From Macrostomum lignano (lineage: Eukaryota): DNA of 64,000 bases. Position 1 is the stretch's first letter, and each line of letters opens with the position of its first letter. The position numbers and the translations under genes were made by a program. The DNA lies in NCBI GenBank assembly GCA_002269645.1, contig NIVC01000630.1, forward strand, positions 186,001 to 250,000, given 5' to 3'. Shown here in pieces: positions 3,391-61,988 of the stretch. The notes under the pieces were generated by a model that saw only the letters and a list, made by a program, of their open reading frames with translations, did no database searches and was not told where the DNA came from.

Positions 3391-6331
3391 TGTAGCATGC
3401 GCTGGCAGGCAGTTCGGGTACCTAGTTTGCACTCCGTGACCCCCACCCAGCCTATCCACTTCCCTCTGCTCGAGCACATCCCAACGCGCACTCAACGAAC
3501 CGGAAATCTGTGTTCTACCAGACAATAAATATACAGGCACAGCCACATTCTATTTCTTCACCTTTTTGAGTGGCTAACTAACACTCGCAACAACCAGCTA
3601 GAGTTGCTCGCTACATTGGCGTCGCAAGCAGGATCCAATGGCGCTACTACAGCTACAGCCGCCATCCGCATTCAGCATTAGCGCGGACCCCCACACCGTC
3701 AGCAAGCGCTGGACAGAGTGGGCCACCACACTAAAGCGATTCTTGGCAGCATCAGGAATCTCGGACGACGCCCAGAAGCAGGAAATCCTCCTGTATACCG
3801 CGGGAAAAGAGGTTGCAGACATCTTTAAAGAGATCTCACAGACGCGTCCCGCCACTGACCAGCCGGAGCAGCAAACGCTTGACTCACTCATAGCGGCGCT
3901 AACTCAGCACTTTCAAGGACGCGACAATGTGGTGTTCACCCGGTACCAATTCCGCCAGTGCACGCAGCTAGACGGCGAAGGTATCGACAGCTGGTACAAC
4001 CGACTGTGCAACGCGGCTGAGGCCTGCCAGTTCGGAGAGCTGCGCCAGTCCCTCATCCGCGACCAGATCGTCGCCTGCTGCCGCAGTGAATCCCTCCGAA
4101 AGCGGCTGCTCAACGTGCCCAACATCAGCCTCCCCGAGGCCCTCCAGCTGGCGAGAACAAACGAAGCAGCCAGCCAGCAAGCGGCAATCATGGAGCGCTC
4201 GGCAGCCGGACCAGCTGAAGAAGTGCATGCGGCTCGCGACAAGCGCCCCACCAGGCGCCCGCCAGCCAGCCCGGCCGACAAATGCCTGCGGTGCGGAGAG
4301 CCCGGCCACCGCACTTGCAACCGGGCCCAAGGCAAGCGCTGCAGCAACTGCGGCAAGCTGCACCACCTGGCGAAGGCCTGCCTAAGCGGCCGCGCACGCA
4401 TCAACATGGCAGAGCCTGAGCCAGAGGAACCAGCAGCGGCGCACCTGGCGGAGGCGGTATTCTCCAACCTCGATCCCAGCCGCACAAGCGCCACCTTCAA
4501 AGCGGTCATCAACGGCGCGAACGTACCCGTCCTGATCGACAGCGGTGCGAGCTGCAACGTGCTCAGCCAGCGGACCCTTCATCTAACGGGAGCACCCGAG
4601 CGGGCGCTTCAGCCCACGCACACGAGGGTCTATCCTCTCGGAGCAGCGAGGCCCCTGACACCCGCTGGCCAGATCACTCTGCACACGAAGATCAACGGCA
4701 ACTCGGAGAGAGTGCGCTTCATCGTCATCAGAGAGGACTGCATCACCATCCTAGGCCGCGAGACAAGCACGCAGATGGGGATGCTGAGGGTCGGACCGCA
4801 GGCCGAGACAGCTCTCACCGCCGGACTGACACCAACGGTTAACGACCTGCACCTTCCGCAAGACTTGCGACTGTCATCGATCATGAAGGAGTTCAGCGAC
4901 AGGTTTCAAGGAATCGGCTGCATCAAGGGCGTCTCAGTCAGCATCCAGCTGAGGGAAGAAGCGGTGCCAGTCTGCCACCCTCCGTCTCGAGTTCCAGTGC
5001 ATCTTCGAACCGCCGTGGAAAAGGAGCTGAAGGGCCAGCTAGCAGCCGGCATCCTGGAGCGAGTGACGGGGCCCAGCGCTTGGAGTTCACGCATGGTGGT
5101 CGTTCCAAAGGCCTCGCCAGGCGAAATCCGCATCACGCAGGACCTGAGGGACGTCAATAAGTACGTCATTCCAGAAAAGCAGCCAATACCGACATTCGAA
5201 GAAGTCACCGACAACGGCCCGCCATTCTCGTCCGCAGAATTCAACGCCTTCCTGCGCAGCCAGGGCGTCCACCACCATCGGACTACGCCGCTGCATCCCC
5301 AAGCCAACGGACTCGTAGAGCGATGCAACCGAGGCCTCAATAAGGCAATCAGAGCGGCGATTCTGGAAGGCAGCGACTGGCAGGCGGCACTGGACGACTA
5401 CCTGGCTGCATACCGGCGAACACCGCACGCAGCAACCGGCATGGCCCCAGCCGACCTGCTATTCGGTCGACAGCTCAACGACACGATCCCCAGCTTGCTC
5501 CACTCCCGGCCGGTTGACGCCAGGCGACAGACCGTCCGCGACCACGACTCCAGGGCGAAGGAGCGGATGAAGGCCTTCGCCGACAGCAAGAGGGGCGCCA
5601 CAGACCACCAGATCACCGTAGGCGACCTCGTACTTCGCCGGCTCACCAACCGCAGCAAGACCGACCCCTTCTTCGAGGCCTCGCCATGGACCGTGACAGA
5701 AGTCCCCGGAAACACCCTGCAGCTCCAACGGGCCGGCCAGAGGTGCTCCAGGCACGCCAGCCACGTCAAGCGAGTCTCCCAGGCAGCCGACGAGTGGCCG
5801 GGTGACCCCGGAGAACGCGACAGCGGACAGGACAGCCGGCCGGATGAACCAACCGGCCCGTCCGAGCCAACCGGCAACCAGGACGTCCCTCTCGCCAACA
5901 GGCCGCACCCCCGACAGGCCAAGGAGACGCCGAAACGCTACGAAGAGGGCGACCGGCGAAAGGCTCTGGACATCTGACAGCTGGCGGAACAGCAGCAAGG
6001 ACTGATCATTGACTCTAATGACTGATACTGATTGCTCGATCGCACGTAACATGAACCCAACGTTGTACCCAACCCCACCCCGGGTTCCAATCCACCAGAC
6101 GAGGGATGTAGCATGCGCTGGCAGGCAGTTCGGGTACCTAGTTTGCACTCCGTGACCCCCACCCAGCCTATCCACTTCCCTCTGCTCGAGCACATCCCAA
6201 CGCGCACTCAACGAACCGGAAATCTGTGTTCTACCAGACAATAAATATACAGGCACAGCCACATTCTATTTCTTCACCTTTTTGAGTGGCTAACTAACAC
6301 TCGCAACAACCAGCTAGAGTTGCTCGCTACA
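3391..6331 (+). mobile_element. Ty3/Gypsy LTR retrotransposon, internally deleted, recently inserted
   Basis: 225-bp LTRs at 3391-3615 and 6107-6331 (TG...CA, identical by eye). 5-bp TSD catac at 3386-3390 and 6332-6336. PBS tggcgtcgcaagcaggat at 3617-3634. Purine tract agacgaggga at 6097-6106. Confidence 0.97.
3638..5977 (+). CDS. Gag-protease-truncated RT fused in frame to the integrase C-terminal half (779 aa)
   Basis: Gag with zinc knuckle CSNCGKLHHLAKAC, protease motif LIDSGAS, RT N-terminus (SAWSSRMVVVPK...QDLRDVNK...PIPTFEEVT), then directly integrase DNGPPF...PQANGLVERCNR. No YxDD, RNase H or HHCC motif. Confidence 0.93.
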   Translation: MALLQLQPPSAFSISADPHTVSKRWTEWATTLKRFLAASGISDDAQKQEILLYTAGKEVADIFKEISQTRPATDQPEQQTLDSLIAALTQHFQGRDNVVFTRYQFRQCTQLDGEGIDSWYNRLCNAAEACQFGELRQSLIRDQIVACCRSESLRKRLLNVPNISLPEALQLARTNEAASQQAAIMERSAAGPAEEVHAARDKRPTRRPPASPADKCLRCGEPGHRTCNRAQGKRCSNCGKLHHLAKACLSGRARINMAEPEPEEPAAAHLAEAVFSNLDPSRTSATFKAVINGANVPVLIDSGASCNVLSQRTLHLTGAPERALQPTHTRVYPLGAARPLTPAGQITLHTKINGNSERVRFIVIREDCITILGRETSTQMGMLRVGPQAETALTAGLTPTVNDLHLPQDLRLSSIMKEFSDRFQGIGCIKGVSVSIQLREEAVPVCHPPSRVPVHLRTAVEKELKGQLAAGILERVTGPSAWSSRMVVVPKASPGEIRITQDLRDVNKYVIPEKQPIPTFEEVTDNGPPFSSAEFNAFLRSQGVHHHRTTPLHPQANGLVERCNRGLNKAIRAAILEGSDWQAALDDYLAAYRRTPHAATGMAPADLLFGRQLNDTIPSLLHSRPVDARRQTVRDHDSRAKERMKAFADSKRGATDHQITVGDLVLRRLTNRSKTDPFFEASPWTVTEVPGNTLQLQRAGQRCSRHASHVKRVSQAADEWPGDPGERDSGQDSRPDEPTGPSEPTGNQDVPLANRPHPRQAKETPKRYEEGDRRKALDI

Positions 6332-11757: not shown

Positions 11758-14569
11758 ATGCCCGGCAGTTGGTGGAAGCGCCTACCCCCAGTTCACATCC
11801 TGTTGATCTGGGGCTTTCTAGTTATTGGCCTGACTGTGAATTTTCTTCAACTGCTCACTCTGCTAGTTTGGCCATTTAGTCGCTGGCTTTATAGAAAGCT
11901 CAATTCATGGCTGGCCTTCCAACTCTGGTGCCAGTTTACTATGCTGTCGCAATGGTATGCTAACAGTAAAATTCGTATGTTTGTGCGGCCTGAGCAGGTG
12001 CCTCACCTGGGCACCGAGCACAGTATTGTGATTATGAATCATCGCTACGAGACGGACTGGATGCTCGGCTGGTGCGCTGTTGAACGCCTGGGAATGCTTG
12101 GGGTGAGCGAACTGGGCGCTGGTGCATGTGGCCAAAACTTTCTAATTCCAGTTGCTGAGCCAGCCTCCCAGATCCTCAGTTGCTGAGCCAGCCTCCCAGA
12201 TCCTCAGTTGCTGGGCCAGCCTCCCAGATCCTCAGTTGCTGAGCCAGCCTCCCAGATCCTCAGTTGCTGGGCCAGCCTCCCAGATCCTCAGTTGCTGAGC
12301 CAGCCTCTAGATCCTCTGTTGCTGGGCCAGCCTTTCAGATTCTCAGTTGCTGGGCCAGCCTCCCAGATCCTCAGTTGCTGAGCCAGCCTCCCAGATCCTC
12401 AGTTGCTGAGCCAGCCTCCCAGATCCTTAGTTGCTGAGCCAGCCTCCCAGATCCTCAGTTGCTAAGCCAGCCTCCCAGATCCTCAGTTGCTGAGCCAGCC
12501 TTTCAGATTCTCAGTTGCTGAGCCAGCCTCCCAGATCCTCAGTTGCTGAGCCAGCCTCCCAGATCCTCAGTTGCTGAGCCAGCCTCCCAGATCCTCAGTT
12601 GCTGGGCCAGCCTTTCAGATTCTCAGTTGCTGGGCCAGCCTCCCAGATCCCCAGTTGCTGGGCCAGCCTCCCAGATCCCCAGTTGCTGGGCCAGCCTCCC
12701 AGATCCTCAGTTGCTGAGCCAGCCTCCCAGATCCTCAGTTGCTGGGCCAGCCTTTCAGATTCTCAGTTGCTGGGCCAGCCTCCCAGATCCCCAGTTGCTG
12801 GACCAGCCTCCCAGATCCCCAGTTGCTGGACCAGCCTCCCAGATCCCCAGTTGCTGGGCCAGCCTCCCAGATCCTCAGTTGCTGAGCCAGCCTCCCAGAT
12901 CCCCAGTTGCTGGGCCAGCCTCATGAATTTCTGTTGCTGGCCAGCTCGACAGACAACCTCAAACAAGTCAAAAATTACTTAAATTTGATCTCCCCTTTTT
13001 CCCCCGCAGAGCTCCAAGATGGTGGGCAAGAAGGTGCTAAAGTTCATCCCCATCATCGGCTGGTCCTTCTACTTCACCGAGTGCATGTTCCTATCTAGAA
13101 ACCTCGATCACGACCGTCGAGTACTGGAGTACCACTCCAAGGAGATGATCTCCTACCCGAAGGAGCACCCGGTCAGCGTGCTGTTCTTCCCCGAGGGCAC
13201 CAGGTTCACCGAGGCCAAACTGGCCGCATGCAACGAAGTCGCCGCCGCCAAAGGCCTCTCTCCAATGCGGCACCTTCTGCTGCCGCGCACTCGCGGCTTC
13301 ATTCTGCTGTTGCAGTCTCTGAAAGGCCGCGCCTCCTGCATCTACGATATGACCCTGGCCGTGCCAGCAGGCGAGGATCCAACTATGATGGCTGCCTTGA
13401 ATGGCCGTCCCTGTCGGGCTGACTTCCTTTGCGAGCGAATCCCCCTGGACGATGTGCCCAGCGACGACGCGGAGTGCTCGAAATGGCTGTTCGATCTCTA
13501 TAAGAAAAAGGTCAGTAAAAAGTCTCCTGATTAGAAGTCACTTAATCTAACATTGGTCCATAATTAGAGATCTCTTCATCCCGGTATCAATCCCCAATTA
13601 GAATCCCTCTAGAAAATTTCAGTGTTGTGAAGAGACTCCCCTAGGCCTAGTAGGCAGTTTTTTCTTATATAAAAAACTAATTGCCGCCATGCCCCCACCC
13701 CAGGTATTCAAAGCTAATTACCGCCATTCCCCCACCCCAGGTATTCAAAGCTAATTACCGCCATTCCCCCACCCCAGGTATTCAAAGCTAATTACCGCCA
13801 TTCCCCCACCCCAGGTATTCAAAGCTAATTACCGCCATTCCCCCACCCAGGTATTCAAAGCTAATTACCGCCATGCCCCCATCCAGGTATTCAAAGCTAA
13901 TTACCGCCATGCCCCACCCCAGGTATTCAAAGCTAATTGCCGCTATTCCCCCACCTCAGGTATTCAAAGCTAATTGCCGCTATTCCCCCACCCCAGGTAT
14001 TCAAAGCTAATTGCCGCTATTCCCCCACCCCAGGTATTCAAAGCTATTCAAAGCTAATTACTGCCATGCCCCCACCCCAGCCCCAGGTATTCAAAGCTAA
14101 TTACCGCCATTCCTCCACCCCAGGTATTCAAAGTCAATTGCCGCCATTCCCCTAACACAAGTATTCAAATTCAAGCTTTGATGTTCACCGCCAGTTACCT
14201 AACTCTTATTTAATAATTAAATTTGTGATACTTCAGGACGACGCCCTGGATTACTACTTCAAGCACGGCCAGTTCCCAGACCCAGCGGCCACCGATATGC
14301 ATTTGGCTCGTCGTAACAAAGACATCACCGCCTATCTGATCTGGTTGGCCTGGTCCATTCTAGTGTTTGCAGTCTTCGTATTGCCTTACATTGTCCAGTC
14401 TAAGCTGAACTGCTGTCTATTTGTCCTGCTATTGGTTTTCATGTCCTACGGTGCCAGAAAGCTCATTGGCGTCACTGAAATTCGCAAGTCATCCAGCTAC
14501 GGTCTTGGCGGCGGAGCGTCCAGCGCCAGTCCTGAGGGCTCTAGTTCGAGTTCTAAGAAAGCTCGGTGA
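11758..14569 (+). CDS. AGPAT3: 1-acyl-sn-glycerol-3-phosphate acyltransferase gamma/delta (AGPAT3/4 family), 392 aa
   Basis: Exons 11758-12102, 13010-13510 and 14237-14569, all phase 0 with GT-AG junctions. Motifs NHRYETD (NHx4D), KFIPIIGWS, FPEGTRF and LLPRTRGF, plus C-terminal TM helices. AGPAT3 versus AGPAT4 cannot be resolved here. Confidence 0.93.
12148..12921. repeat. 28-bp minisatellite, about 27 copies (AGPAT intron 1)
   Basis: Unit gccagcctcccagatcctcagttgctg(a/g). Confidence 0.95.
13678..14150. repeat. 37-bp minisatellite, about 12 copies (AGPAT intron 2)
   Basis: Unit attcaaagctaattaccgccattcccccaccccaggt. Confidence 0.92.
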
Positions 14570-14769
14570 ATCTAGGAATCTAGAAACGTCTGGTTACATT
14601 TAATTTCGTTTCGCTGTGTGGGTCCAACAGTGTCTGCTTGTCTCTGTGTCTTGGCGCTTGTCTTTTTGTATTTGTTGTGCTGTCTGCGGGTCTTTTTTAT
14701 CATTCATTCTTAGTGTCAGTTTGCCTGTATTTAGGAACCTGTCTGGTCCTGTTATAGTGCCTACCTGCT

Positions 14770-14817
14770 TGTTTGTCTCTCTGTCTGCCTGTCTGTCTGT
14801 GTGTCTGTGTGTCTGTG

Positions 14818-14848
<31 letters not shown>

Positions 14849-14849
14849 G

Positions 14850-14888
<39 letters not shown>

Positions 14889-14913
14889 GTGTCTGTGTGT
14901 CTGTCTGTCTGTG

Positions 14914-14968
<55 letters not shown>

Positions 14969-14969
14969 G

Positions 14970-15037
<68 letters not shown>

Positions 15038-15039
15038 CA

Positions 15040-15078
<39 letters not shown>

Positions 15079-15080
15079 CA
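14770..15080. repeat. (TCTG)n / (TGTG) microsatellite
   Basis: Direct reading. Confidence 0.95.
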
Positions 15081-15448
15081 TCTTGGCGTCTTTCTGACTG
15101 ATTGACTGTCTGTCCCCACTGTATTTTCTTCAATTTGTCTTTGTGTCCAACTTAAATACCAGTACGTGCCTATTTCGCTAAATAATTGTTAATAAAAATC
15201 TTTGATTCACCTGCTGTAGTGCCACGCAGCTTTTTATAGCTTTTTAAACTCCTATTCTGTGTAGAATATATTCGCAGTTAAATAATTTATGTAGTCGGAT
15301 GTCAGACAGTACTAAGCCATTTTAGTAGTATAGCTATTGTTGAACTCGATCAAAGTACACATTTGTACCTTAGTTAAACATGTATTTTTCACTCATAGTT
15401 ATTAGTTTTAGTAGTAGTAGTAGTAATATATATATAAAACTAGTAATA

Positions 15449-15486
<38 letters not shown>

Positions 15487-15732
15487 CTGGACTAGTAATA
15501 TATATATATATTAATATATATATTTATATATATATTACTAGTCCAGTACTTAAGGCTTTAAAGATAGGCAGTTATTGTATTTAAATCACAATCACAATTT
15601 GCAAGACATCATGGTTGTGATTCATTTAGCTCTGCTCAAATAACCAATCTTGTGTTGTAGTTTTATTTCCTGCTAATTAACCCTTCTTTATTAAAGTTAG
15701 AGAAGATTAGAATAAACATTTCAAGTGCCAAG

Positions 15733-16204
15733 TTGCGACCACAGATACTAGAGTAACTGGATGGGCCACTCATTCAGATATACTTAGCAAAACAGCTTTC
15801 TACTTTCAGTTCAGTAGCAAATAAGAATATATAAGCTATTTTATAAGAATAAAAGCAGCTGAAATGACTTTGATAAGTTTAGAATCCCATACTTGCAGGT
15901 GTAAACAGCTTGCTAGTTGGTTCAGCAATAATGTACATTGGCCAGTCCACTGAAATGTACATGGCAGCTTTAGGCTAGGAAGTCCGAAAAAGGTAATAAA
16001 AATTGGGGCGGGGCGGTGGGTAGTTTGGAAAGACGCGGTTAGATGGTTTAATCTGGGGGGAAGAGTCATTAAAAGAGCCTTGGCTTTAAAAATACCTATT
16101 CAAATGCTTCCCTTCAACTTACTACTGAACTGAAAGTAGCTTACACGCAAATGTGCTGAGTGGCTGGCCCATCCAGTTGTTCTAGTATCCGTGGTTGTGA
16201 CAAT
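15733..16204. mobile_element. MITE family, copy 1
   Basis: Imperfect TIRs of about 40 bp (ttgcgaccacagatactagagtaactggatgggccactca and its reverse complement at about 16156-16204). The body is homologous to 62688-63030. Confidence 0.75.
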
Positions 16205-16572
16205 GTAAGCGTCAAGGCAATGTTTTTTTTACTTTAGAGTTTTTCATTCTAATTTGTTTGTAAGGCACATTTTATTGCTAGCTAGACCTTTTTAAAGCAC
16301 CTCAGCTTACGCAAGTGCAATCAAAATTTGGTCTGTAAATTTTATTTGATGACCTTTCTGGAAAGAACAATTCAACATATCATATTGCTCACAGACTTGT
16401 ATCTCTGACGGAGTGTTATTTTTAGCTAGAATTATTATACACGCCCTTAGTGCATTCCATTTAAATATTATTATCATATTATATTATTATATATCATACT
16501 ATTATTATCATTACTTGGACGCGCTTTGCACTTTTATTCTGAATTCATTTTGGGAATTGCATGGGGGGCATC

Positions 16573-16657
16573 ACAAACCCGAAAAATCACAACTCCGAAA
16601 GTTCTAGCAATGTTCAACACTATTTTGGTTTTCGGAGTTGTGATTTTTCGGGTTTGT
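16573..16657. repeat. 28-bp perfect inverted repeat (tiny MITE/hairpin)
   Basis: acaaacccgaaaaatcacaactccgaaa at 16573-16600 versus tttcggagttgtgatttttcgggtttgt at 16630-16657. Confidence 0.75.
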
Positions 16658-18897
16658 AATGGCGACCCATTGCATGTAATAGGAGACTAAGACAACAGAA
16701 ATAAATATTAATGCCTTAGTAACTAGAATCTGCCAATTTCTCGATGCTTATGTTATTTCTTTAATAACTTTGATTTGTAACTTTTTGTTAGATTAAGGTC
16801 TGCTATTTCCGTGTCGAAAAACAACAAGTGCCTTAATTATATATTGGACTTTTGAGTCTTGACTACTGCGTTGAGTGCTGATAAGAAGTAGAAGGTGCAG
16901 TGTAAAATGTGCCACTTTTTAGAATAAAATCCTTAATAGTTAAACGTAAAGTAAAGTATGCTACAGCTAACACGCATGCAGAAGTAGAAAAAATTAATAT
17001 ATCGAAGTGCTTCATCTTCTTGTGACTCTTGTGACTGATTTCAACTGAATTTCTCCTGATAACATTTTTTCTATGTAGCATCAAGTGCATGTCTGTGACT
17101 GGCTACTTATCAGTAGTATAGAAAGTAAATTTGTTGCACTTTGCATTGCGTTTTGTATATTATTTTAATCTATTTCATGCGTTTTATGTTCTATTAGCTT
17201 GCGTTTTTCTTAGAATATGGTAACAACTTATTAAGTAATATATAACATACGAGTAGTAAATAAATCTGTAGCTAGGACGGATTGTCTTTGTAGACATTTT
17301 GTCTGCAATCGAAAGCCATCAGTAAATTGCAGTGGAGAATTTATTTTGCTTCAAGATGAAACAGTGATAATCGAAATCATCTGTTGTACCAGACCAAAGT
17401 CAAGCCAAATTTTGTGAGAAGGTCCTCTTTGACTCGCCCATCTGTTCCTTAGCTACGACTGAGATAACTCTACTAACAGACTAGCAAGCCTACAATTACA
17501 TCAAAGTAAAAAAATGATCAAAATTAAATTTTTCCGACTCGGCTGTTAATAAATTTCATAATTTGATCAATCGATATACTCACAGGCGACTCTAGCATCG
17601 ACTCTTGTGACTTTTTACCGACTCAAACGACTGTAATGCGATGGAGAGGCAAATTTTGGATCCTGAACACATTACGTCCAAAAGTCGTGTTAGCGCTTAA
17701 CTTTCTACTAACTCAAGTAGACTAAACAAACAGTGTTTATAAATGCGAAATGCGATTCTTATTCATGAAGTGACGCAGATGCGCTTCAGACGCAACTCAG
17801 TGATTCTACAGCGACTGGCGCGCCTCAGATACGAATCTACACCCCCAGAGTCACTAAAATGACTTGTTATAGAAGCGTTCGGAGTCGTTTTAGAGTCGCT
17901 TCTTTCCTATTTACCTGCAACGTCTCTGGGACACTTCTTGGCCTAGGTACCGTTTTTGTCGGGAGAGTAGACCGTTTTTGGGTTGACTTTGCGGCCTTCG
18001 CGTCTTGGAAGTCTACGAATATAGTTTATCAATTTATTATAACATGATTGTGTATTTTACGTCGGTAGCTTTTAGTAGTCCATGGCACAACCTTACCTGT
18101 CTTTGAAGATTAAACCGTGCGTTATTTAATAGACATTCACAACCGAACGATCCTGTTCCATGCAGCGACAAATGAACGGCCATAAACTTCTTCAGGCGTC
18201 CTACCTATTGATCCCTTGCAGTCTTACGTTCCTGCTTGTCGCATTTCCTTCGATTTTTGTCACCATTTTTTCCAATTTAGCAAGCTAGTGTTTGATCACT
18301 TGGCAACTTCGCGAATAGCTCGTTCGCGAGATCAACTTTGGAACCGCCGACGCCCTCCTCCCGTCCCAATTCACCAACGCTTCCTTGATCCGTCTTTGAT
18401 CGGACAGACCCAGAGGCTACTTCCCAAAGAAAGTACTATACGTTCTAATCTAACTAATGAAATGAAAAAATTAAAATGAAAAAACGCTATATAACAAAGC
18501 ATGCAGTAGGGATTATTAATCCTAATTTGGCGGTTCTTTTCTTAAATCAAGCAATCTTTTTACCAATGATGTCAACAAAAAACTCCATGTACAGCATTCT
18601 TGAAACTGAGCGCAGATTTTCTTACATAGCTATAGATTATAGAAGGCGAAAAAATCGTCCAACCAGCTACAACAATAGTTTTAGTTGCTTGTTGTTCTGA
18701 TAAGAACAAAGACCCTTGAATAATTCTGTCTTTGCCAATATGTATTTTTTCGTACGGATGTACCTTTAGTCTTATTGCAAAGTAATTATATTAGTCAGCT
18801 AAAGCGTATAGTAGGACATTGGGTAGTTTGTTGCTTAACCGCGCTTAGAATGAGTCATTGGACAGGTGCTCCATCAGTTGCTGCTTACATGCGGCTT

Positions 18898-19502
18898 TTA
18901 ATCATTGCGTTCCTGGTTGTCCGTGGTATAGCTCTTCTTGTCAATCATGGGATCCCTGAGGATTCTCTTGTCGATCATGAGATCCCTGAGGATTCTCTTG
19001 TCGATCATGGGATCCCTGAGGATTCTCTTGTCAATCATGGGATCCCTGAGGATTCTCTTGTCAATCATGGGATCCCTGAGGATTCTCTTGTCAATCATGG
19101 GATCCCTGAGGATTCTCTTGTCGATCATGGGATCCCTGAGGATTCTCTTGTCGATCATGGGATCCCTGAGGATTCTCTTGTCAATCATGGGATCCCTGAG
19201 GATTCTCTTGTCAATCATGGGATCCCTGAGGATTCTCTTGTCAATCATGGGATCCCTGAGGATTCGCTTGTCATTCCTGAACTCTCCTTCGTTGCTGAAC
19301 TTGCTCGAGCTCCATTCGACCTCCGGGGCTCCAAAGCTGCCAGGCAGAATTGCAATTCCTGGAAAAGAAGCTTGATTATCAATTGTCTCGCAGGCAAAAA
19401 TTGCGTATTAAATTAATTAGCAAAATATATCGCCGCAAAACAGACTAACTTACCTGCAGCTATGCAGATCAAAGCGACCAGAAAATTAGTCTTCCAAATC
19501 AT
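18898..19502 (-). CDS. Neuropeptide/secreted peptide prohormone (169 aa) yielding 11 x ILRD(P/L)MID
   Basis: Exon 1 19502-19454 (MIWKTNFLVALICIAA, donor G|GTAAGT), a 95-nt intron with acceptor cttcttttccag, and exon 2 19358-18898 in matching phase 1. Signal-peptide-like N-terminus. KR dibasic sites between all 11 repeats; the last is followed by KK. Confidence 0.85.
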
Positions 19503-19623
19503 TTCCTACTTTTAACAACGTTGGACCTCTTAGTAATTGATTAGTTTTGGTGTTTTTAAATAAGATTTGAAACTAATTTACAAAATATGCTGCAATTTTC
19601 TGCTCGTCACTGCTTGTCCGCCA

Positions 19624-19667
19624 TTAAATATAAGATTCTGCGTTCTGTTTTCATTGGTCAGCCAATG
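19624..19667 (-). promoter_or_regulatory. Candidate core promoter of the prohormone gene
   Basis: On the minus strand, a CCAAT pair (cattggtcagccaatg, 19652-19667) and a TATA-like ttatatttaa (19633-19624), about 125 nt upstream of the ATG. Confidence 0.35.
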
Positions 19668-20029
19668 GAGATGTAGATGATGACTACAATTTCTTGTTGC
19701 GTGTATGTCAACACATTCTAAAAGTTTAACAGGCTTTCAATGTAAGCATTCACTGTAAAGCTAATATTTTCATGGCTGTTTGCTAGCACTTGAACGATAT
19801 CGTATATAAGCTCCGTTTTTCAAGTGCCTTACTCGAGTAGAACGGAAGTAAGTTGAGTGGGCTTCACGAACTGCATAGCTTCTTCTAAGAGTGAATTGAG
19901 AAAAGGAAAATCTAACTCAATGCTGATGTCTTAAAACATTAAAATTGAAAATAATCTGTGAAATACTTAAACTATTGTAGGATTTCTAACCGCAGCACTT
20001 TTACGCGAATTCTTTTTTGAGTAGGAATT

Positions 20030-20460
20030 AGCAGAGATCTAGAGAGAATCAGAACAGAGATCTAGAGGGAATCAGTGCAGAAATCTAAAAGAAATCACAG
20101 CAGAGATCTAGAGGGAATCAGGGCAGAGATCTAGGAGAAATCACTGCAGACATCTAAAAGAAATCACTGCAGAGATCTAGAGAGAATTAGAGCAGAGATC
20201 TAGAGTGAATCGGTGCAGAGATCTAAAAGAAATCACGGCAGAGATCTAGAGGGAATCAGGGCAGAGATCTAGGAGAAATCAGTGCAGAGATCTAGATTGA
20301 ATCAGAACAGAGATTTAGAGGGAATTAGAACGGAGATCTAAAAGAAATCACGGCAGATATCTAGAGGGAATCAGGGCAGAGATCTAGAGGGAATCAGGGC
20401 AGAGATCTAGAGGGAATCAGGGCAGAGATCTAGAGGGAGTCGGTGCAGCGATCTAGATAG
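20030..20460. repeat. Degenerate minisatellite of about 23 bp
   Basis: Unit gcagagatctagagggaatcagg and variants. Confidence 0.85.
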
Positions 20461-21799
20461 AGGAAATCCCTTCATAGATGTAGTTGAACCCATCTGTTTT
20501 TCTTGAGTCTTTAACTTTCTATTCAGCTTGAAAAAAATCTCATATATCTATCGTGTCTGATTGATCAATCCCAGATTCACTTTGACCTCATCGACTCCAA
20601 GGGCAGCTATTGACAGGATATCGGGTTCTGCGAGTGTATCGATTTAATATTTTCCCAAGGTAGAAGTGAGTAGCTATTATCCTTTCAATGCAGCGTCACG
20701 CAAACAGCGCGTGTAATACGTTCAATCGAAGTTTCCTAAAGAAGCCGGAATCAGTTGCGTGTAGCGCGCGTGGGTTGGCGAGCTGGGTGAAAGTGGATAC
20801 GAAATGGAGGTGTGTACAGTTTTGAGGTAATTCTAGAATCTGCATAGATCCATTTCTGTGGTATTGACATCGGCAAACTCAGCCTTTATAGGTTTCATTT
20901 AAATTTATAAGCAACCACTCACGCTTGCCAAAAAATACTTTCGCCACATTGATGTCGACTTTAAATTCGAAGATGAAGAATAATGCTCTACATGAAAGTA
21001 GCAAGGATCAAACACGACATAAAACTCGCGCGATATAAATCGTGTTCAATTTTAGGTCGATTTCCTGGAAAAATACACTGCGGAGATAGGGAATAATCAT
21101 TTTTTCATCACAAAATCAATGATTGAATTTGCACTGGGGCAGTGAAGATCACCATTCCTTTAAATTTAGCACGAGCGAGTTGTGTAGTGAAAGTTATATC
21201 TTCATATCGATTTTTTATTTCATAAGCCTCAGCCAAAGCTGTACATACGAATGAAATCTTTGTTTGGTTCCTTTTTGAATCAAGTATATTTGTAATAAAA
21301 TTGTTGCATTCAGGTACTCTTAAGCCATTATTGAAGGTAGTTCCATAATTTAAATACATATTAGTAGCTATTCGTAGTCTTTTCTAAGTAATTAAATGTA
21401 ATTGAAAGTTTACCAATATCATTTTTTATATTGTTGTTGACGCAGTGTTTAGAAAGCTATCAAGTTAAGTTAAGGCCCTGCTTAAGGCCAAGAGTAGCTA
21501 CCTGCATGCAAAAACTTTATTACAAATAATACCTTGATTCAGGAAATTACAAAACAAATATTTCACCCGTGAGTATACATGTACAGCTTTAAATTGGTTT
21601 GGGCATGAAATAAAAAACTATAAAAAATATAGCAGAGTAGCATGTTGTGCATGCTGAATTACGTGATGAATGAAATGATTAACTATTTCCTATCTCTGTC
21701 ATATTTTTCCAGGAAATTCTTGCTAAAATATACAGCATCCTTGAGGTTTACATCCCGTCATACTACAGAAGTGGTCCTTGATAAGTAGCTGTTGCATTG

Positions 21800-22350
21800 A
21801 AAATGAGAGTATTGGGGCTAGTCGCAATGGTGTGTTACATTAAGTGTGAGAGGGGTGGAGGCTAGTCGCAATGGTGTGTACATAAGGGTGAGAGGGGTGG
21901 GGGCTAGTCTCAATGATGTCTACATAAGGGTGAGAGGGGTGGGGGCTAGTCTCAATGGTGTGTACATTAAGGGTGAGAGGGTGGGGGCTAGTCTCAATTG
22001 TGTGTACATTGAGGGGGAGAGGTGTTGGAGCTAGCCTAGATGGTATTTACATTGAGGGGTGGGGGCTATAGTCTCAATGGTGGGTACATTAAGGGTTGGA
22101 AGGGTGGCCGGGAGCTAGCCTAGAGGGTTTGTACATTGGGGGTGACAGGGGTGGGGGCTAGTCTCAATGGTGTGTACATTAAGGGTTGGAAGGGTGGCCG
22201 GGAGCTAGCCTAGAGGGTTTGTACATTGGGGGTGAGAAGGGTGGGGGCTAGTCTCAATGGTGTGTACATTAAGGGTTGGAAGGGTGGCCGGGAGCTAGCC
22301 TACAGGGTTTGTAATTTGGGGGTGAGAGGGGTGGGGGCTCGCCTAGATAA
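21800..22350. repeat. G-rich minisatellite (about 42-48-bp units, later alternating as a dimer)
   Basis: gagaggggtgggggctagtctcaatggtgtgtacattaagggt alternates with tggaagggtggccgggagctagcctagagggtttgtacattgggggt. Confidence 0.85.
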
Positions 22351-22994
22351 GCGTGTCTAGACATGCCTATTCTGGCTCGAACACAGCTGCTAAACGGGAC
22401 AGAAAGAAGGACTCTAGACTTGACGGATTAAGCCCAATTCGCAATCTCAAACTTCTAAGCTGTCTGGCTAATTACTTTGGTAGAGCTGAGCGGCTGAGCT
22501 GGCAAGAAACAGGCAGGGAAGCTGCCAAAGACGGGGCACTAGTAGCTGAGAAGCAAATCAAAAAGGAAGTCAATTTTTCTTTCCCAACTGTAGCTACATT
22601 TCTAAGAATAGAAAAATCACTTCATTTTTTAACCCTTTCACCCTTGCAGATAGAAGTCGCTTCGCTTTTATTCTTGGCAAGCATTCATTAAATAGTTATG
22701 CCTAATTGCAGTGCTTCAGTTCTCTCTCCCATAATTCTATCTCTTCATTCCTCTCTCATTAAACCTCTGCTCCTAAAGGTATCTCGATTTTATGCAAAGC
22801 TGACAATCAAAATCTCATTATGAGCTGCAGCTTCAGTGCATGCGGCAGATTATAAAACTTGTTTTTTCCAAAAAAATAATTACAGTAATAATACTTATTT
22901 ATTTATAATTTCCATTCTTTAGCATCCGTCAGATAGCATTTTGTACACATACACGACTGTAGATTTAGGAAATACAGTCTCCCTCTTGCTTTCT

Positions 22995-24210
22995 TGCCCT
23001 CTCTTTCTCCCAGTCATCTTTCTCTCCATCTCCCCCTCTCCTTCTCTCCCTTTTCTCCTTCCCTCCTCCTTTTCTCCCCCTCTCCCCTCTTACTATCCTT
23101 CTTTCCCTCTCCTCCTCTCCCTCTCCTTCTCTCCCTCTCCTCCTCTCCCTCTCCTCCTCTCCCTCTTCTCCCTCTCCTCCTCTTCCTCTCCTTCTCTCCC
23201 TCTCCTCCTCTCCCTCTCCTCCTCTCCCTCTCCTCTCCCTCTCCTCCTCCCTCTTCTCCCTCTTCTCCCTCTCCCTCTTCTCCCTCTCCTCCTCTCCCTC
23301 TCCTCCTCTTCCTCTCCTCCTCTTCCTCTCCTTCTCTCCCTCTCCTCCTCTCCCTCTCCTCCTCTCCCTCTTCTCCCTCTCCTCCTCTCCCTCTTCTCCC
23401 TCTCCTCCTCTCCTCTCCTCTCCCTCCTCTCCCTCTTCCTCCCTCCTCCTCCTCTCCTCCTCTCCCTCTCCTCCTCTCCCTCTTCTCCCTCTCCTCCTCT
23501 CCTCCTCTCCCTCTCCTCCTCTCCCTCTCCTCCTCTCCCTCTCCTCCTCTCCCTCTCCTCCTCTCCCTCTCCTCCTCTCCCTCTCCTCCTCTCCCTCTCC
23601 TCTTCTCCCTCTCCTCCTCTCCCCCTCTCCTCTCCTCCTCTCCCTCTCCTCCTCTTCCTCTCCTCCTCTTCCTCTCCTTCTCTCTCCCTCTCCTCTCCTC
23701 CTCTCCCTCTTCTCCCTCTCCTCCTCTCCCTCTTCTCCCTCTCCTCCTCTCCCTCTCCTCCTCTCCCTCTTCTCCCTCTCCTCCTCTCCTCCTCTCCCTC
23801 TCCTCCTCTCCCTCTCCTCCTCTCCCTCTTCTCCCTCTCCTCCTCTCCTCCTCTCCCTCTCCTCCTCTCCCTCTCCTCCTCTCCCTCTCCTCCTCTCCCT
23901 CTCCTCCTCTCCCTCTCCTCCTCTCCCTCTCCTCCTCTCCCTCTCCTCTCCCTCTCTCCCTCTCCTCCTCTCCCCCTCTCCTCTCCTCCTCTCCCTCTCC
24001 TCCTCTCCCTCTCCTCCTCTCCCTCTCCTCCTCTCCCTCTCCTCCTCTCCCTCTCCTCCTCTCCCTCTCCTCCTCTCCCTCTCCTCCTCTCCCTCTTCTC
24101 CCTCTCCTCCTCTCCCTCTCCTTCTCTCACTCTCCTCTCACTCTCCTCCTTTCTCTCTCCTTTTCTCCTTTCTTTCGCCTCCCTCTCTTTTCCCTTCGAT
24201 CTTCCTCTAC

Positions 24211-24275
<65 letters not shown>
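22995..24275. repeat. About 1.3-kb polypyrimidine/polypurine low-complexity tract ending in (CT)n
   Basis: Almost exclusively C/T, with a ctctccctctcctc-type period. Confidence 0.95.
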
Positions 24276-24280
<5 letters not shown>

Positions 24281-25667
24281 CTCCTCTTTCCTGTCCTGCA
24301 GTTCCGCCTGTTGCACCCTGGGTGAGCAATAGCAAGCTGTATGATGATTAGAACCTAAAGTGGATCGCTATACGCATGCTAATGAGCATTTCTGCTTGTC
24401 TCCTCCGTCGCTGCGGGTCGACTGAGCTCGCCTTTGAACTGCCGCAGCAGACGGGGCAAAGCTAACTAAAAAACGGACACTTTCGAAATATTGAAAAACT
24501 GCAGTTATATACGAGGCTCGTATACTTAGAAACGTGCTGCAAAACTTCTTATTGCCTTATTCGAAAAATTGAAAAGTCTGTTTGAAACACTGAAAGTCGA
24601 GCGGTCCGATTTCTTGTTCCATCAAATCCTCTCTCTGAGAAACATAACTTGCACCCAGTAACCACGCTGAGGAAATTTTTAATTCTTGTTTCAGACGAAA
24701 ATGGTTTATAGTACAGCCGTGACAGCAAGGAGCACCTCCAGAGAGAGGCGCCAGCTACAGAGGGGCGCCAGCTACATTTTTTCTCATGCATAATGCTCAT
24801 TTCATATTAGGATTCGATATTGCATGTAATTATCTTTGACATCCTCAACCGTTCTTTGTTAGTGTTCGCACTTTCCAGCTACATCAACTTGATCGTTAAA
24901 TCGACCATGAAATGCATTAGCACGAGCTATGGGAATCTCGCTAACAGTTTATTGATTCGAGTGAGTTAGATGTACGCAACTTTTCTGTCCCAACCCAGGT
25001 CTCGTGATATTTATTTGTCTCGCTGTCAGAAGGTGATAGCTGGGAGGAAACAATATTGAAAAGAGATTAAAAAGTGAGGCTTAGACAGAAAGAGCCAATC
25101 TCATATCCGTCGTGAGATTAAATGCCGAAAGGAATGCCAGAAGGTCGGATATACTGATCGTGAGTATGATGAAAAAGCAAATTTAGAAGCCGTCAAGGAA
25201 ATTTGAGCAATCCGACTCGCGGGTGTTTCTAAATGATGCCCCTCCAGATCGAGTCAATTCCTGATAGATAGAATGACAGTTTGCGAATCTGAAAAATGTA
25301 TTCTGACTTAATGAGAGACTCGGTTTGGTACGGTGTCTTAGTTTTTAAAGCTGAATTAAAAAGTCGATCTCGAATTTAATGATTTTGCGTTCCGGCTTAT
25401 TGCTAGATTTAAAAAACGGACAAAAAATCTGTTTCAAAGAAATGATCATTAAGCGCAAAAATCACGCGCGATTAATAAGCATTGGCTGATGATGATTGCT
25501 GAGATTGTGTTGGAGATTTCACGTCGATGCTCTGCGTTCGCTTTTAGTACATCGGCACGAATGATTAATGAACCGTAATTAGGAGCAAAAGTTGCTAAAC
25601 TGGCGTTTATCAACTTTTCGTAGAAAATCTCATCTTATCCAGCACACTTAAATCTAGACGTGGAGAG

Positions 25668-32362: not shown

Positions 32363-35300
32363 ATGGCAGATGGAAACCAACAAACATCGCGAAATCAACT
32401 GAGCAGCAGGCTTGATCTTTCTGCTACCTCAGTATCAGAGGAAGGTAGGTCGATCCAGCGTTTTTTCATGTTTACGTATCTTGAAGCTGGATGATTTCGT
32501 TGCATCTGATACATAATTACGTTGAAATGAAATATATTAAAGGCACTAAAAGCCGATAAGTTATGTAAAATTAAAGACTATAAATGATTTGTAGTTGTTA
32601 TAATGTTGAGTTGAGTTATAATTAGGGAAATATAAAAAACATTAAAGATTCTGTATTATTCTTTAGATTTATAGTGTATGGTTATTAATACAGTGGCGAG
32701 AAATCTTGGACTTAAATAAAGTTAATTAAATATGACACATAGAAAGAGTATTTTAATTTATCGAAACGATAGACAAATTTAATATGTTTAAATGTTTTCA
32801 CAAACCCAACAGAACTTTCTGTTCCACTTTAGTTTTCAAAGACTTATAAAGACATTTTAGTACTAATAGACCACCATTGTATCCATCAAAAATTAGGGTC
32901 GTATACTTTATTTAGTTTTCAACTTTTTTAACTAAAAATTTCTAGTATAATTTTATTTTCATATAAGTATTTTCCTATTCTTTACAGGTAAACTATGCAG
33001 GTAATAAAATGCAAACGAACTAAAATTAAACATATTATGCCGATGCCGAATATCATATATAAATGAAAATTGGATGCAGTCACTTTCTCAATCCACATCG
33101 TTCTTTTGTTATAAAAATACTGGGATTCTGAAAATTATGTAAAACTATCCTTTAAGCTAATATTTATAGTAATAGAGTTAGAGACTTTTTATGCAAAATA
33201 TGATTATAACTTATTTCATTTTTAATAAACAACAAAGTATCGTTTACTCGTACAAAAATTACTTTTTGTATATATATTTAAAAACAGAACGAAAAAAGCA
33301 AAATGATATTTGTTGCTACTATTTTAGATCTATTTCACATCTGGGAGGCGGTCTCCAGATTTATCGAGAAGAATTTGCAAAATCAAAAGGTGAGTTATTT
33401 GTGTCATTCTAATCTAGTTCTTCTATTCGAACAACAGCTTAGCTTATCTGCCCATGTTCCGTCAATCTTCCAGGGTGTACACATTCCCAACTTCGGTACA
33501 TTCTCGTTCGTCCAAAAGAAGCTGGACGTTGGCAATGCCAAGTACCTGCTCATCCAGCGGCCAGTGTTTCAGCTATTCGAGCGCATCTGTCAGACGCACG
33601 GCCTCGCCCAGACTAAGTATCACGTGACCGGTTCGGTGCCCGTGGTGCAGCTCAACTATGCCGCTCTGTCCGTTGAATCTTCTGGACATTTCGATCGCGA
33701 CAAAATTGAGACTTGCGTTCGCGAGACTCTCGGCGCTCTGAACAGGTCCATCGCTATGCAGCGCAACGTTGAGCTGGTCTTCTGTGGAGTTGGCCGCCTG
33801 CAGATCCGTTGCGGCGGAGTGAAGTTCAAATTCTATAAAGACTTTGTTAATAGCTTGGATCGAAGCGGCACTGTTGTTCGGGCGCTGCAGCAGGTGCGAA
33901 ACACATTTTTATACCCAAGTTGAATTAATAGCTTAAAATCACGGTAGCTTTTGTGCCTCCTTACGGTAACTTTGGCGTCCCCTCACGGTAGCTTTGGCGC
34001 CCCCTCTCACTAGCTATTGCGCCCCCTCACGCTAGCTTTGGCGCCTCCTCACGCTAGCTTTGGCGCCCCCTCAAGGTAGCTTTGGTGCCCCCTCAAGCTA
34101 GCTTTGGCGCCCCCTCACGGTAGCTTTGGTGCCCCCTCAAGCTAGCTTTGGCGCCCCCTCACGGTAGCTTTGGTGCCCCTTCAAGCTAGCTTTGGCGCCC
34201 CGTCACGGTAGCTTTGGCGCCTCCTCACAGTAGCTTTGGCGCCCCCCTCAAGGTAGCTTTGGTGCCTCCTCAAGGTAGCTTTGGCGCCTCCTCACGGTAA
34301 CTTTGGCGCCCCCTCAAGGTAGCTTTGGCGCCTCCTCACAGTAGCTTTGGCGCCTCCTCAAGGTAGCTTTGGCGCCTCCTCACAGTAGCTTTGGCGCCTC
34401 CTCACGGTAACTTTGGCGCCCCCTCAAGGTAGCTTTGGCGCCTCCTCACAGTAGCTTTGGCGCCTCCTCACAGTAGCTTTGGCGCCTCCTCACGGTAGCT
34501 TTGGCGCCCCCTCAAGGTAGCTTTGGCGCCCCCTCAAGGTAGCTTTGGCGCCTCCTCACAGTAGCTTTGGCGCCCCCTCAAGCTAGCTTTGGCGCCCCCT
34601 CAAGATAGATTTGGCGCCCCCTCAAGGTAGCTTTGGCGCCCCCTCAAGGTAGCTTTGGCGCCTCCTCACGGTAGATTTGGCGCCCCCTCAAGGTAGCTTT
34701 GGCGCCTCCTCAAGGTAGCTTTGGCGCCTCCTCACAGTAGCTTTGGCGCCTCCTCAAGCTAGCTTTGGCGCCCCCTCAAGGTAGCTTTGGTGCCCCTCAA
34801 GGTAGCTTTGGCGCCTCCTCAAGGCAGCTTTGGTGCCCCTCAAGGTAGCTTTGGCGCCTCCTCACGGTAGCTTTGGCGCGACCCCTCAACGTAGCTTTTG
34901 TGCCCTCCTAACAACAGCTTTGCTGCTGGTTCTGGCGCCGTCTGATATATGCCCCCCTTCATCGCAGCGGTTATTTTAGTTCCACACAAGCCTTGAATAA
35001 ATTGAATGGCATAACCATTTGAATCTGATCTTTTCAGAGACCCGGCACGGCGGACTCCGTCATGTCCGATCGACCAGCCTCCAGGGCCTTCAGCGTCGCC
35101 CTGCCAAAGTGAGTATTAGTTGATTGATGACTCAAAATCAATCCTTTAATAATTGAGAACATTTATGTATATGAAAAGTAGTTTCCTAAGTGTGTTACTT
35201 ATCAGTAGTATCTACGAAAAAATGTATCTTAATATTTAATTTTACGTCGAAATTTTCTCAGTCCTCTGTTCTTCAGAGAAAAAAGCATTTTGGATGCGAG

Positions 35301-50649: not shown

Positions 50650-53182
50650 TCACTCTTTAAATCTCAACTGCTGACTGTCTTTTCTAAGCGTGGTCGACGA
50701 ATCGCTATCGATGAACTCCAAGTCGCTTGACAGCCTACGGCGCAGCGTCAAGTCGATGGGCGGCTGGCAGCCATCGGGCAGCTCGTTGCCACCGTAATTT
50801 CCGTGGCTGTACAGCAGCGGAGACAGCATCGCGTCGAACTCGTCTTCGTTGGCGTCTTCAGCCTCTTCCACAAGTGCCGGCGCGTCTCGTATTTCGTTGC
50901 TACCTGCCGCCGCTGCCGCTGCCGCCGCCGCCGCTGCTGCTCCGTGCTGGTTAGAGCGACGCTCGCTTTGAGCACCCGCTGTTGAACAATAGCCATTAGC
51001 TGTAAGTTGTTCGAGTCAGTTTGTTAGCTAGTTAATGGGCAGAATCAAGGCAGAACCCCTGAGCACGAGCACACACACAGATAGGCACGCATACACAGGT
51101 TCTCGCGGGATTTACAGCGGCCCTGACTTTATTATCTGACTTGACTAAATGGCTCACACAGAAGCCGGTTTCTAAAGGCATATGGAACCACGATTACTAC
51201 TTTGTCCTGGAATTAAAATGTGTCAGAGGTGCCAAGTAGGTGTCAGATGCGTCAGAGCGCATAGTCCAGGATATAAGCTGCATGAACCTTTGAATAACAA
51301 CCCCACGCTTTTGCAGACCAAGAACTTGGCTCACCAGACAGATTTCGAAGCTTCTTTCTGCCGCAGGTCATCAAATAAATAGCGTGCGCTCTGAAGTGCT
51401 TGTTCAAGCCGAAGTAGATAAAAAAGTTGCAACTGTAGCACAGCAGGTTGGGCAGATTGGCCACCAGACGGTACAGCCGGTAAACCAGGCACTGGTCTAG
51501 GCCGCAGCCGCACAGGTACCGAAGAGGGAACAGGTTGTGAAACGCGAACGTCCACGGAATCTGGCCCAGCAGCACCAGGCAGATGACCACAATTAGCATG
51601 GCTGTTAGTCGTCGCTGAGCCATCTGGCGTCGAACGCTGACGCTTGGACGCTTTATCGGCGTTGTCAACGTTGCCGACATTGACGTGCTGCTGTCCTCGC
51701 CGGCGCCCCAGCGGCTGCGATTTCCGGTTCCGGCGCCTCCGCCGCCGCCGGAACTAGTGGAATATTTCTTCATCCGCCTAGACTGCCTTCGCAGCACCCA
51801 TATTAGGCAGAGATTAGCCACGGCCAGAAAGATTAGCGAGACGAATTGGCTGACAATGGCACGCGACCAGGTGGCCACCTCGTACCAGGGGCTGTAGAAG
51901 AATTCCAGTCGTTCGGCCTCTACGTAGCTTCGATTTTTACTCTCGTCGTACCCGTAACGAGCTCGGAAGCCGAAAAATGAGTACAGGTTAATAACAGTCG
52001 ATGCTCCGACGATTCCGACTGTGATTAGAATGGCGTTGAACGAGGTGCAACGAGTCTTAGAGATGTTATAGTGACTCATCGAGATGTATCTTTCTAAGGC
52101 TAGGCACACAGTTAGCCAAATGCTGGCGGTCTCCGTGATACTGTTCAACGGGCTGAGTCCGTTGGCCAACAGGAAGTACATGAGCAGCTTGGTCTGGCGG
52201 ATCGCTTCAGAGCCCCGAGGCTTCCTGGAATGTTGATGCGTTGAGTCAGAAAAATAAGGGAGAGATTATATATTAGGACTAATATTTACATTAGGGAGAT
52301 TATTCGGACTAATATTTACATTAGGGAGATTATTCGGACTAATATTTACATTAGGAAAATTATTAGGACTGTACTGGTCATTGGGGAAATTCGAAGTGAC
52401 AAGCATGCAACTTTGAATGCAATCATTGACGCCCAACCTAATTGAGCTTGTTTGACCCAGCAATTTAGTACACGACTTTTAAGCTTTAGGTTCTTTTAGA
52501 GTAAACAATTTGATTTATTTAGTCAAAAGAATTACAAAAAAACTCTTGTTAAAAGCACTTTGAGAAAGCTTTTTGAGTTAATTTAGTCAGGAAACATTAA
52601 GCTCACAATGCATTCATTTAGGCTCAACATGGATTTAGCGACTCAAAGGTCAGCTATTGATACTCTTGAAAATTGCCAAGACTGTTATTTGAGACCGCGC
52701 TGAGTTCGACGACTCTAATTAACGGACGGGTCAGCTTTGAGTAGCCGAAAGGGGTGTGTCTCCCAATTAAGTAAAAGCACGACTAGCGTGTCTTATGGAG
52801 AGTGGGTTCGGTAATATGGGATTAGATAGAGTGGGATTAGGTAATAGTGGGATTAGTAATGGGATTAATGCGGTCTTACCGAGAAAAATCAATAACGCCA
52901 TAGAAACAAAAGTGCTCACTTTCTCACTGCCTGAACGAAGCACTCTGGAGCCTTAAGCAGCAAAGTGAGAATGTCAAACAAGGCCAGGGCTGTCATGAAC
53001 ACGAACGGCGCCCCTTTGAACTCTTTGCCAGCAAAAAATACCGCCATGGTGATTGCGTTCAAACCCAGGCCGGCAAAACAGATGGCGAGTTGGGTGAGAT
53101 AGGCTGGGTGCTCCACCGTGATGGAGAAGAGCTCGACTGAATCGCATGAGATGTTGTTTGTAGCGGACTCATTGGCTTGCAT
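50650..53182 (-). CDS. Class A (rhodopsin-like) peptide-receptor-type GPCR, about 500 aa
   Basis: Exons 53182-52920, 52224-51335 and 50999-50650 are phase-consistent (2/1). N-terminal sequons NES and NIS, seven hydrophobic segments, ERY after TM3 and NFFIY in TM7. This signature is typical of FMRFamide/myosuppressin/sex-peptide-receptor-like families. Confidence 0.88.
52268..52370. repeat. 30-bp tandem repeat, 3 copies (GPCR intron)
   Basis: aatatttacattagggagattattcggact. Confidence 0.85.
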
Positions 53183-55712: not shown

Positions 55713-55772
55713 CCTAGTGGCGTGAGCAGGAACTTTAATTGGAGGCGCTGCAACCGTTGCGGTGGGTCTTGG

Positions 55773-56210: not shown

Positions 56211-56269
56211 GATGGCTATAGAGACAGAAGCTAAGCTTCTGTCATTCGACGAGCTTGATTACCTCCTTA

Positions 56270-61819: not shown

Positions 61820-61988
61820 TAGCACCAGGGGCTTTAGGACCAGGGGCTTTAGCACCAGGGGCTTTAGCAGCAGGGGTGCCAGCACCAGCACCAGGGGCGC
61901 CAGCATCAGGGGCGCCAGCACCAGGGGCGCCAGCACCAGGGGTGCCAGCACCAGCACCAGGGGCGCCAGCATCAGGGGCGCCAGCATC
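61820..61988. repeat. GC-rich repeat of about 15 bp
   Basis: agcaccaggggc(gcc/ttt). Confidence 0.8.

Follow-up and report, generated by a model that had tools for sequence, protein, structure and literature searches.

A minisatellite in Macrostomum lignano lies within a spliced gene that probably encodes a secreted multi-copy peptide precursor

We report that a 30-bp tandem repeat in the flatworm Macrostomum lignano is best explained as the coding body of a two-exon gene for a secreted multi-copy peptide precursor, which is probably convertase-cut, species-restricted and neuropeptide-like. The array lies in a 64-kb stretch of contig NIVC01000630.1, to which all "window" coordinates refer. That this is a real, spliced protein-coding gene we consider very likely; that the precursor is cut at its KR sites into short peptides is a reasonable expectation, and that it is made in neurons is a tentative suggestion. 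Most likely the product serves in signalling, as a secreted peptide of the 'multicopy peptide', neuropeptide-like type, and judged from the sequence features the label 'neuropeptide prohormone' is plausible for the putative product. The gene is already present in GenBank in a truncated form, and the class of precursor is a recognised one.

Splicing and translation of the minus strand (window 19502-18898) gave a 510-nt CDS and a protein of 169 aa. The features of the gene are as follows (a slash marks an exon boundary or a cleavage site).

19624..19657, minus strand: possible core promoter, with CCAAT at 19657-19653 and the TATA-like TATATTTAA at 19632-19624
19454..19502, minus strand: exon 1, 49 nt, ATG and MIWKTNFLVALICIAA(G), with the phase-1 donor CAG/GTAAGT
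19359..19453, minus strand: intron, 95 nt, GTAAGT...TTCTTTTCCAG
18898..19358, minus strand: exon 2, 461 nt (stop counted), covering the rest of the signal peptide, the spacer, the 11 units, the tail and TAA
19502-19454 plus 19358-19330, minus strand: whole predicted signal peptide, 26 aa
19330..19358, minus strand: exon-2 share of the 26-aa predicted signal peptide, ..GIAILPGSFG
19264..19329, minus strand: acidic spacer APEVEWSSSKFSNEGEFRND of 20 aa, then the first KR
18934..19263, minus strand: eleven in-frame 30-nt units, 9 x ILRDPMID-KR, ILRDLMID-KR and ILRDPMID-KK
18933-18901, minus strand: C-terminal tail SYTTDNQERND, 11 aa
18900-18898, minus strand: TAA stop

An earlier sequence-only reading of the window had placed the ATG at 19502, the G/GTAAGT donor at the end of exon 1, the acceptor at 19358 and a 95-nt intron between the two, all of which proved exact to the base, and the 169-aa sequence that it gave was matched letter for letter on re-splicing. 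The 3' end of the intron reads TTTTCCAG and is followed by the G that opens exon 2. Exon 1 supplies the n-region of the predicted signal peptide along with the greater part of its hydrophobic core; phase-1 introns within the region coding for the signal peptide are common among secreted-protein genes. The signal peptide was called by rule, with the (-3,-1) rule applied by eye, and shows a basic start (MIWK), a hydrophobic core of 15-17 residues (maximum KD 3.15 over 10 residues), a Pro-Gly break and a predicted cleavage site SFG/AP, at which positions -3 and -1 carry small residues and position -5 a Pro.

Twelve K[RK] sites bound the 11 octapeptides, KK being found only after the last unit, and all of these sites are retained at two related loci with 10 and 12 units (see below). 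In addition, each unit carries R-I-L-R/D, an RxxR furin-type motif. The octapeptides are acidic (pI about 4.5) and predicted to be non-amidated, as there is no amidation Gly. Searching the 169-aa protein against Pfam gave no family above cut-off, all matches being sub-threshold noise; the protein is therefore composed of signal, spacer and repeats and nothing else, i.e., it is a small precursor without other domains. The architecture that had been claimed for it, a signal peptide and an acidic spacer followed by KR-flanked repeats, is thus real, and it is also seen at the 10- and 12-unit loci.

Upstream of the ATG, CCAAT and the TATA-like TATATTTAA are present at 155 and 130 nt, respectively, as weak matches to the consensus. 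Within 600 nt past the stop no canonical AATAAA or ATTAAA was found, the hexamers present there being AATATA, AATAAG and AATACA. A separate array of 23-bp units with a 69-bp super-period is located about 530 nt upstream of the ATG (window 20030-20461) and has stops in all frames.

Window positions 13898-24502 correspond to the locus that we refer to as L005 of NIVC01000630.1 (100% identity over 10,605 nt), on which an annotated CDS spans positions 5001-5605, equal to window 19502-18898. This is the GenBank gene BOX15_Mlig009070, the product of which is given as "hypothetical protein" of 99 aa (P0159; PAA77719.1/PAA79507.1, BOX15_Mlig009070g1/g2) and is encoded both on NIVC01000725.1 (locus L004) and on NIVC01000630.1 (L005) in assembly GCA_002269645.1. 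Its cluster mate (P0010; PAA84435.1, BOX15_Mlig021643g1) is likewise a "hypothetical protein", of 89 aa, and the exon 1/exon 2 junction ..CIAAG/IAILPGSFG.. is present in both. Hence the gene is not 'hidden', as the sequence-only reading had it, though the annotated product is cut to 99 aa. The Mlig_3_7 annotation was generated from transcripts only, using StringTie/TACO on STAR-mapped RNA-seq, BLAT-mapped MLRNA150904 and TransDecoder (PMC5730564), and consequently the first intron, like the strand and the fact of transcription, is supported by RNA data, indirectly, through the method of annotation. Since the transcript-derived models have the same ATG, stop and junction as the structure given above, the locus is transcribed and spliced, and the exon structure and strand proposed from the letters are borne out by BOX15_Mlig009070. 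The same annotation is without a gene on the other strand at this locus.

The GenBank models carry just 3-4 peptide units, and the 99-aa model skips the following stretch as a second 'intron'.

19071..19280, minus strand: 210 nt with TC..TC ends, seven units removed

Deriving the 99-aa protein from the genome requires that exactly positions 5223-5432 of L005 (window 19280-19071) are deleted, and this solution is unique; at the 12-unit locus the identical 99-aa product needs a deletion of 240 nt. A gap whose length follows the number of genomic copies, and whose ends are non-canonical, points to a repeat-collapsed short-read transcript that was mapped back to the genome. We conclude that the 210-nt 'intron' is an artefact and that the colinear 169-aa product is real, while the 99-aa entry is not. 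The annotated lengths are accordingly 99 aa against 169 aa (L005) and 179 aa (L004), and 89 aa against 159 aa at a third locus, L003. Other repeat-encoded proteins in the Mlig_3_7 annotation are probably shortened likewise. Transcript-based annotation of this repeat-rich genome shrinks repeat-encoded secreted proteins (here from 169 to 99 aa and from 159 to 89 aa), and surveys of peptide precursors that use shortened models or repeat-masked sequence would undercount copies or miss genes.

The window holds another faulty gene model. A gene for a CCDC81 HU-domain protein is located at 32363-33923 on the plus strand (ORF at 33303-33923), and the corresponding UniRef model from M. lignano (P0007, 113 aa) is a mosaic of segments that are 100% identical to the window and that skips genuine coding stretches. 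The intron of this gene at 33390-33473 (84 nt, GTGAGT..CCAG) is comparable to the 95-nt intron of the precursor gene.

In the assembly the precursor gene is represented by three loci.

L005 (window): 11 units, 169 aa
L004: 12 units, 179 aa
L003: 10 units, 159 aa

The ATG, the splice sites, the 95-nt intron, the frame, every KR/KK and the stop are kept at all three (3/3). The sequence-only reading had named the loss of the frame or of the KR sites at orthologous loci as a finding that would speak against it; the 10- and 12-unit copies keep both. L004 is identical to the window across 1,500 nt on either side, which makes it either an allele or a duplicate of very recent origin. Between L003 and the window the divergence is 1.2% in the upstream non-coding sequence and about 1.1% in the non-repeat coding part, in line with what the partly duplicated DV1 genome leads one to expect (PMC5730564). 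An acyltransferase gene (PF01553/PF16076; window 13898-14569, plus strand, L005 9934-10605) is the next annotated neighbour, about 4.3 kb past the stop of the precursor gene and on the opposite strand, and since it is common to all three loci the duplication spans at least that block.

Variant sites across the three loci amount to about 2 synonymous versus 5 non-synonymous. The changes that alter the protein are W3G, a Y>F substitution in the tail and, in one unit each, L>R and P>L; ATT/ATC and CGA/AGA are the synonymous sites. No signal of purifying selection was detected in the three-locus comparison, the coding divergence being about the same as that upstream; with the L004 flanks identical and L003 diverged by only about 1%, the comparison is uninformative on selection. 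Within the window, the array is a single one (18936-19273) with period 30, 11.3 copies, 97% matches and no indels according to Tandem Repeats Finder. The variants between its units are as the sequence-only reading described them: the ATT/ATC difference occurs in 4 of the 11 units, CCC>CTC in one unit, and the first KR has CGA instead of AGA. The argument for the minus-strand frame that had been built on the synonymous variants is not significant, given the 2 synonymous versus 5 non-synonymous sites and the equal coding and upstream divergence; moreover, gain or loss of whole units keeps the frame automatically.

To find relatives, the 169-aa protein was used as query against 5.8 billion protein clusters in a word-index search, where nothing scored; with the 89-aa GenBank protein as query its own cluster alone was returned. 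An exhaustive HMMER search of 1.84 billion representatives gave 689 hits, among which the 89-aa protein was 97% identical and aligned from residue 1, and the other hits that were inspected were discarded as unrelated proteins sharing a 10-residue period. Hence, relatives outside M. lignano were found neither among the 5.8 billion clusters nor among the 1.84 billion representatives, in which the coverage of other Macrostomum species is uncertain. The back-translated unit had 0 hits in the JGI metagenomes. Text searches of the literature for the peptide, its sub-strings and the ids Mlig009070 and Mlig021643 returned nothing relevant, and neither a neuropeptide catalogue nor a single-cell atlas for M. 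lignano was found there. A transcript fragment from a marine eukaryote (P0095; Tara Oceans MERC, ERR1712130_690379) encodes a KR-bounded decapeptide, [YLRDDTIEKR]x8, the unit of which is identical to ILRDPMIDKR at 6 of 10 positions. It was dropped as a homologue, being 5'-truncated, with neither taxon nor contig on record, and the match is within reach of chance.

These data bear on what kind of secreted protein the gene encodes. Restriction to one species together with a lack of purifying selection is what is typically seen for reproductive or gland products that evolve fast, and the protein might instead be a secreted repetitive protein of a non-neural gland (prostate/seminal fluid, adhesive, pharyngeal or epidermal), with its KR sites uncut or cut in the furin manner, that acts outside the body in mating, mucus or defence. 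Such a product fits the same gene structure and signal peptide, the restriction to one species in all searches and the lack of a purifying-selection signal, as well as the RILR/D furin-type motif in every unit and the acidic, non-amidated peptide. We nevertheless consider it unlikely, if the most serious of the alternatives, because a KR after every 8 residues in a small precursor with an acidic spacer is the standard signature of convertase processing and nothing links the gene to a gland.

The genomic surroundings of the array call for caution of another kind. In M. lignano, 15% of the genome consists of tandem repeats (PMC5730564), and the window is itself rich in minisatellites, with >25 other arrays in 64 kb, several of them with open frames. 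Three of the six frames are open through the array described here and, considering the other arrays with open frames, an open frame is by itself not evidence of coding. Two arrays were used as controls: the one at 58958-60222 has a 33-bp unit in 38 copies and a 436-aa ORF, (LSVTLFSIASI)n, while the one at 55767-56211 has a 20-bp unit, is open in three minus frames and encodes KR. Neither of these two has a signal exon or splice features. By contrast, the 128 kb that the two strands of the window add up to contain a single CAGGTAAGT, located at the donor of exon 1. We also scanned the whole window for mini-exons that combine an ATG and a GTRAGT donor with a basic start and a hydrophobic stretch (KD at least 2.5). 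The only candidate was exon 1 at 19502-19454, i.e., a signal exon positioned 95 nt upstream of the array ORF on the correct strand and in the correct phase, for which a rough estimate of the chance probability is about 4e-4. Exon 1 and its splice sites are thus unlikely to sit beside the array by chance. A second copy of the 169-aa protein is absent from the window according to tblastn.

Codon usage was scored as log-odds trained on 507 codons from two other genes in the window. The minus-strand frame scored +0.21 bits/codon compared to -0.17 for the plus-strand ORF, and for the training genes the values were about +0.3 in sense and about -0.24 to 0 in antisense; the support for the minus frame is weak but consistent. 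Given the signal exon, the splice sites, the gene model and the coding-like codon usage, the array does not qualify as a non-coding minisatellite. It resembles the ordinary minisatellites of M. lignano in its 30-bp unit, its 97% identity and its copy number, which varies by locus (10, 11, 12), and it differs from them in being part of an ORF that is transcribed and spliced and has a signal exon.

If the array had expanded in or near a weak transcript, TransDecoder could have taken the longest ORF and the protein would be absent or without a role. The abundance of arrays in the genome and in the window is in keeping with such a young, functionless ORF, as are the lack of homologues outside M. 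lignano in our searches, the neutral appearance of the substitutions and the 97% identity between units, which indicates a recent expansion. It demands, however, that five features coincide: a signal peptide, a phase-1 intron with perfect consensus sites, a spacer and a tail that are in frame and free of repeats, dibasic sites in all units and coding-like codons; the rough estimate of about 4e-4 for the sole signal-exon-like element in 128 kb, 95 nt upstream and in the right phase, likewise speaks against it. We therefore regard this as improbable, and more so than a gland product.

Coding on the opposite strand is more improbable by far. An unspliced plus-strand ORF with its ATG at 18850 or 18889 and its stop at 19416 (M..RLLIIAFLVVRGIALLV-[NHGIPEDSLV]x11-...) is open for 213 codons and has ATG starts and a hydrophobic N-terminus (KD 2.9). 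The hydrophobic residues at its start are to be expected as a by-product, being read codon for codon from the antisense of the hydrophilic minus-strand tail. In the transcript-based annotation the plus strand is without a gene here, the codon log-odds of -0.17 is like that of the antisense controls, and exon 1 with its perfect splice sites is located outside the ORF and would be left unexplained. On these four grounds we reject the plus-strand ORF.

For the secreted multi-copy precursor that we favour, processing could proceed as follows. The preproprotein would enter the ER and lose its signal peptide at SFG/AP, a subtilisin-like proprotein convertase would cleave after each KR/KK, and the basic residues would be trimmed by an enzyme of the carboxypeptidase E/D type. 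The expected yield is about 10 copies of ILRDPMID (about 972 Da), non-amidated and acidic, together with one ILRDLMID. Because each unit carries an RxxR motif, DPMID is an alternative and would be the end product if R-I-L-R/D were also cleaved. Ile follows directly after every KR, which counts against efficient cleavage; at dibasic sites a beta-branched residue in P1' is less favourable. A processing enzyme of the kind needed is known from the animal, as the in situ pattern of the M. lignano PC2 homologue RNA815_2403.2 is that of the nervous system and RNAi against it is lethal (PMC4490696). Counted against the favoured interpretation are the lack of a purifying-selection signal, of an amidation signal, of a canonical poly(A) hexamer and, in the databases searched, of an orthologue outside M. 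lignano, and the fact that the genome is packed with minisatellites.

Several known systems share parts of this architecture. In proenkephalin and the molluscan FMRFamide precursors convertases cut after KR, KK or RR, carboxypeptidase trims the products, and copy number sets the dose. The same processing logic is proposed here, while there is no sequence relationship to these precursors and the amidation Gly is lacking; the 97% DNA identity among units also indicates an expansion much younger than in either of them. Yeast alpha-factor and the fungal Kex2-processed repeat proteins comprise a signal, a pro-region and KR-bounded tandem peptides that a protease of the Kex2/furin family cuts in the secretory pathway, and their products have effects outside the cell. 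The architecture is the same, although these proteins belong to another kingdom and show no homology, and their EA/DA spacer dipeptides are absent in the Macrostomum gene. Pedal peptide/orcokinin precursors are, like the one described here, multi-copy, non-amidated and acidic, and their peptides comprise about 12-20 residues with conserved motifs such as xFDxID..GF. ILRDPMID has 8 residues and lacks the motif, which places it outside this family, and a resemblance to pedal peptides, raised as speculation in the sequence-only reading, found no support in the sequence or in the Pfam and protein-database searches.

The closest parallels are precursors that have been defined by architecture. The multicopy peptide (MCP) precursors of xenacoelomorphs are a recognised class, many members of which occur in a single species without orthologues (PMC6188537), and the planarian 'secreted peptide prohormone' (spp) genes were identified with the same combination of signal peptide and dibasic sites (PMC2953531). 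The Macrostomum gene is like these in having a signal peptide, a small size and many near-identical peptides ('paracopies') placed evenly between dibasic sites; some MCP/spp precursors are also non-amidated and many lack orthologues beyond one species or clade, just as our searches found none for this gene. In contrast to them, ILRDPMID matches no motif named in PMC6188537 or PMC2953531 or found by text search.

If the peptides are made, they would add an undescribed lineage-specific signal to a transgenic flatworm model, in which the availability of RNAi makes their function directly testable. Furthermore, the loci with 10, 11 and 12 units show how unequal exchange can alter the dose of a peptide. 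A bolder proposal, to which we give little credence at present, is that this is a very young, Macrostomum-restricted signalling-peptide gene in which slippage of the minisatellite drives the evolution of peptide dose, a single inbred line having 10, 11 and 12 copies at its three homeologous or allelic loci, with ILRDPMID/DPMID as a new class of bioactive peptide, e.g. a neuropeptide, or an allohormone or pheromone in a sexually conflicted hermaphrodite. Were it true, the gene would provide a live example of the birth and expansion of multicopy neuropeptide genes.

Among the other features of the window is an ORF for a rhodopsin-family GPCR (309 aa, 51252-52181, minus strand; Pfam 7tm_1 1e-10, Srw-type 4e-9). 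It is of a kind that is often peptide-binding and lies about 32 kb from the precursor gene, with no evidence of any link between the two. An array of 15-bp units at 61821-61986 is Gly/Ala/Pro-rich (GAPGA-like) in several frames. Finally, a fragment of an LTR retroelement (3638-5977, plus strand) contains a 779-aa ORF with matches to a gag zinc knuckle, an aspartyl protease and an integrase, and its G+C content is 64% compared to about 40% in the surrounding sequence.
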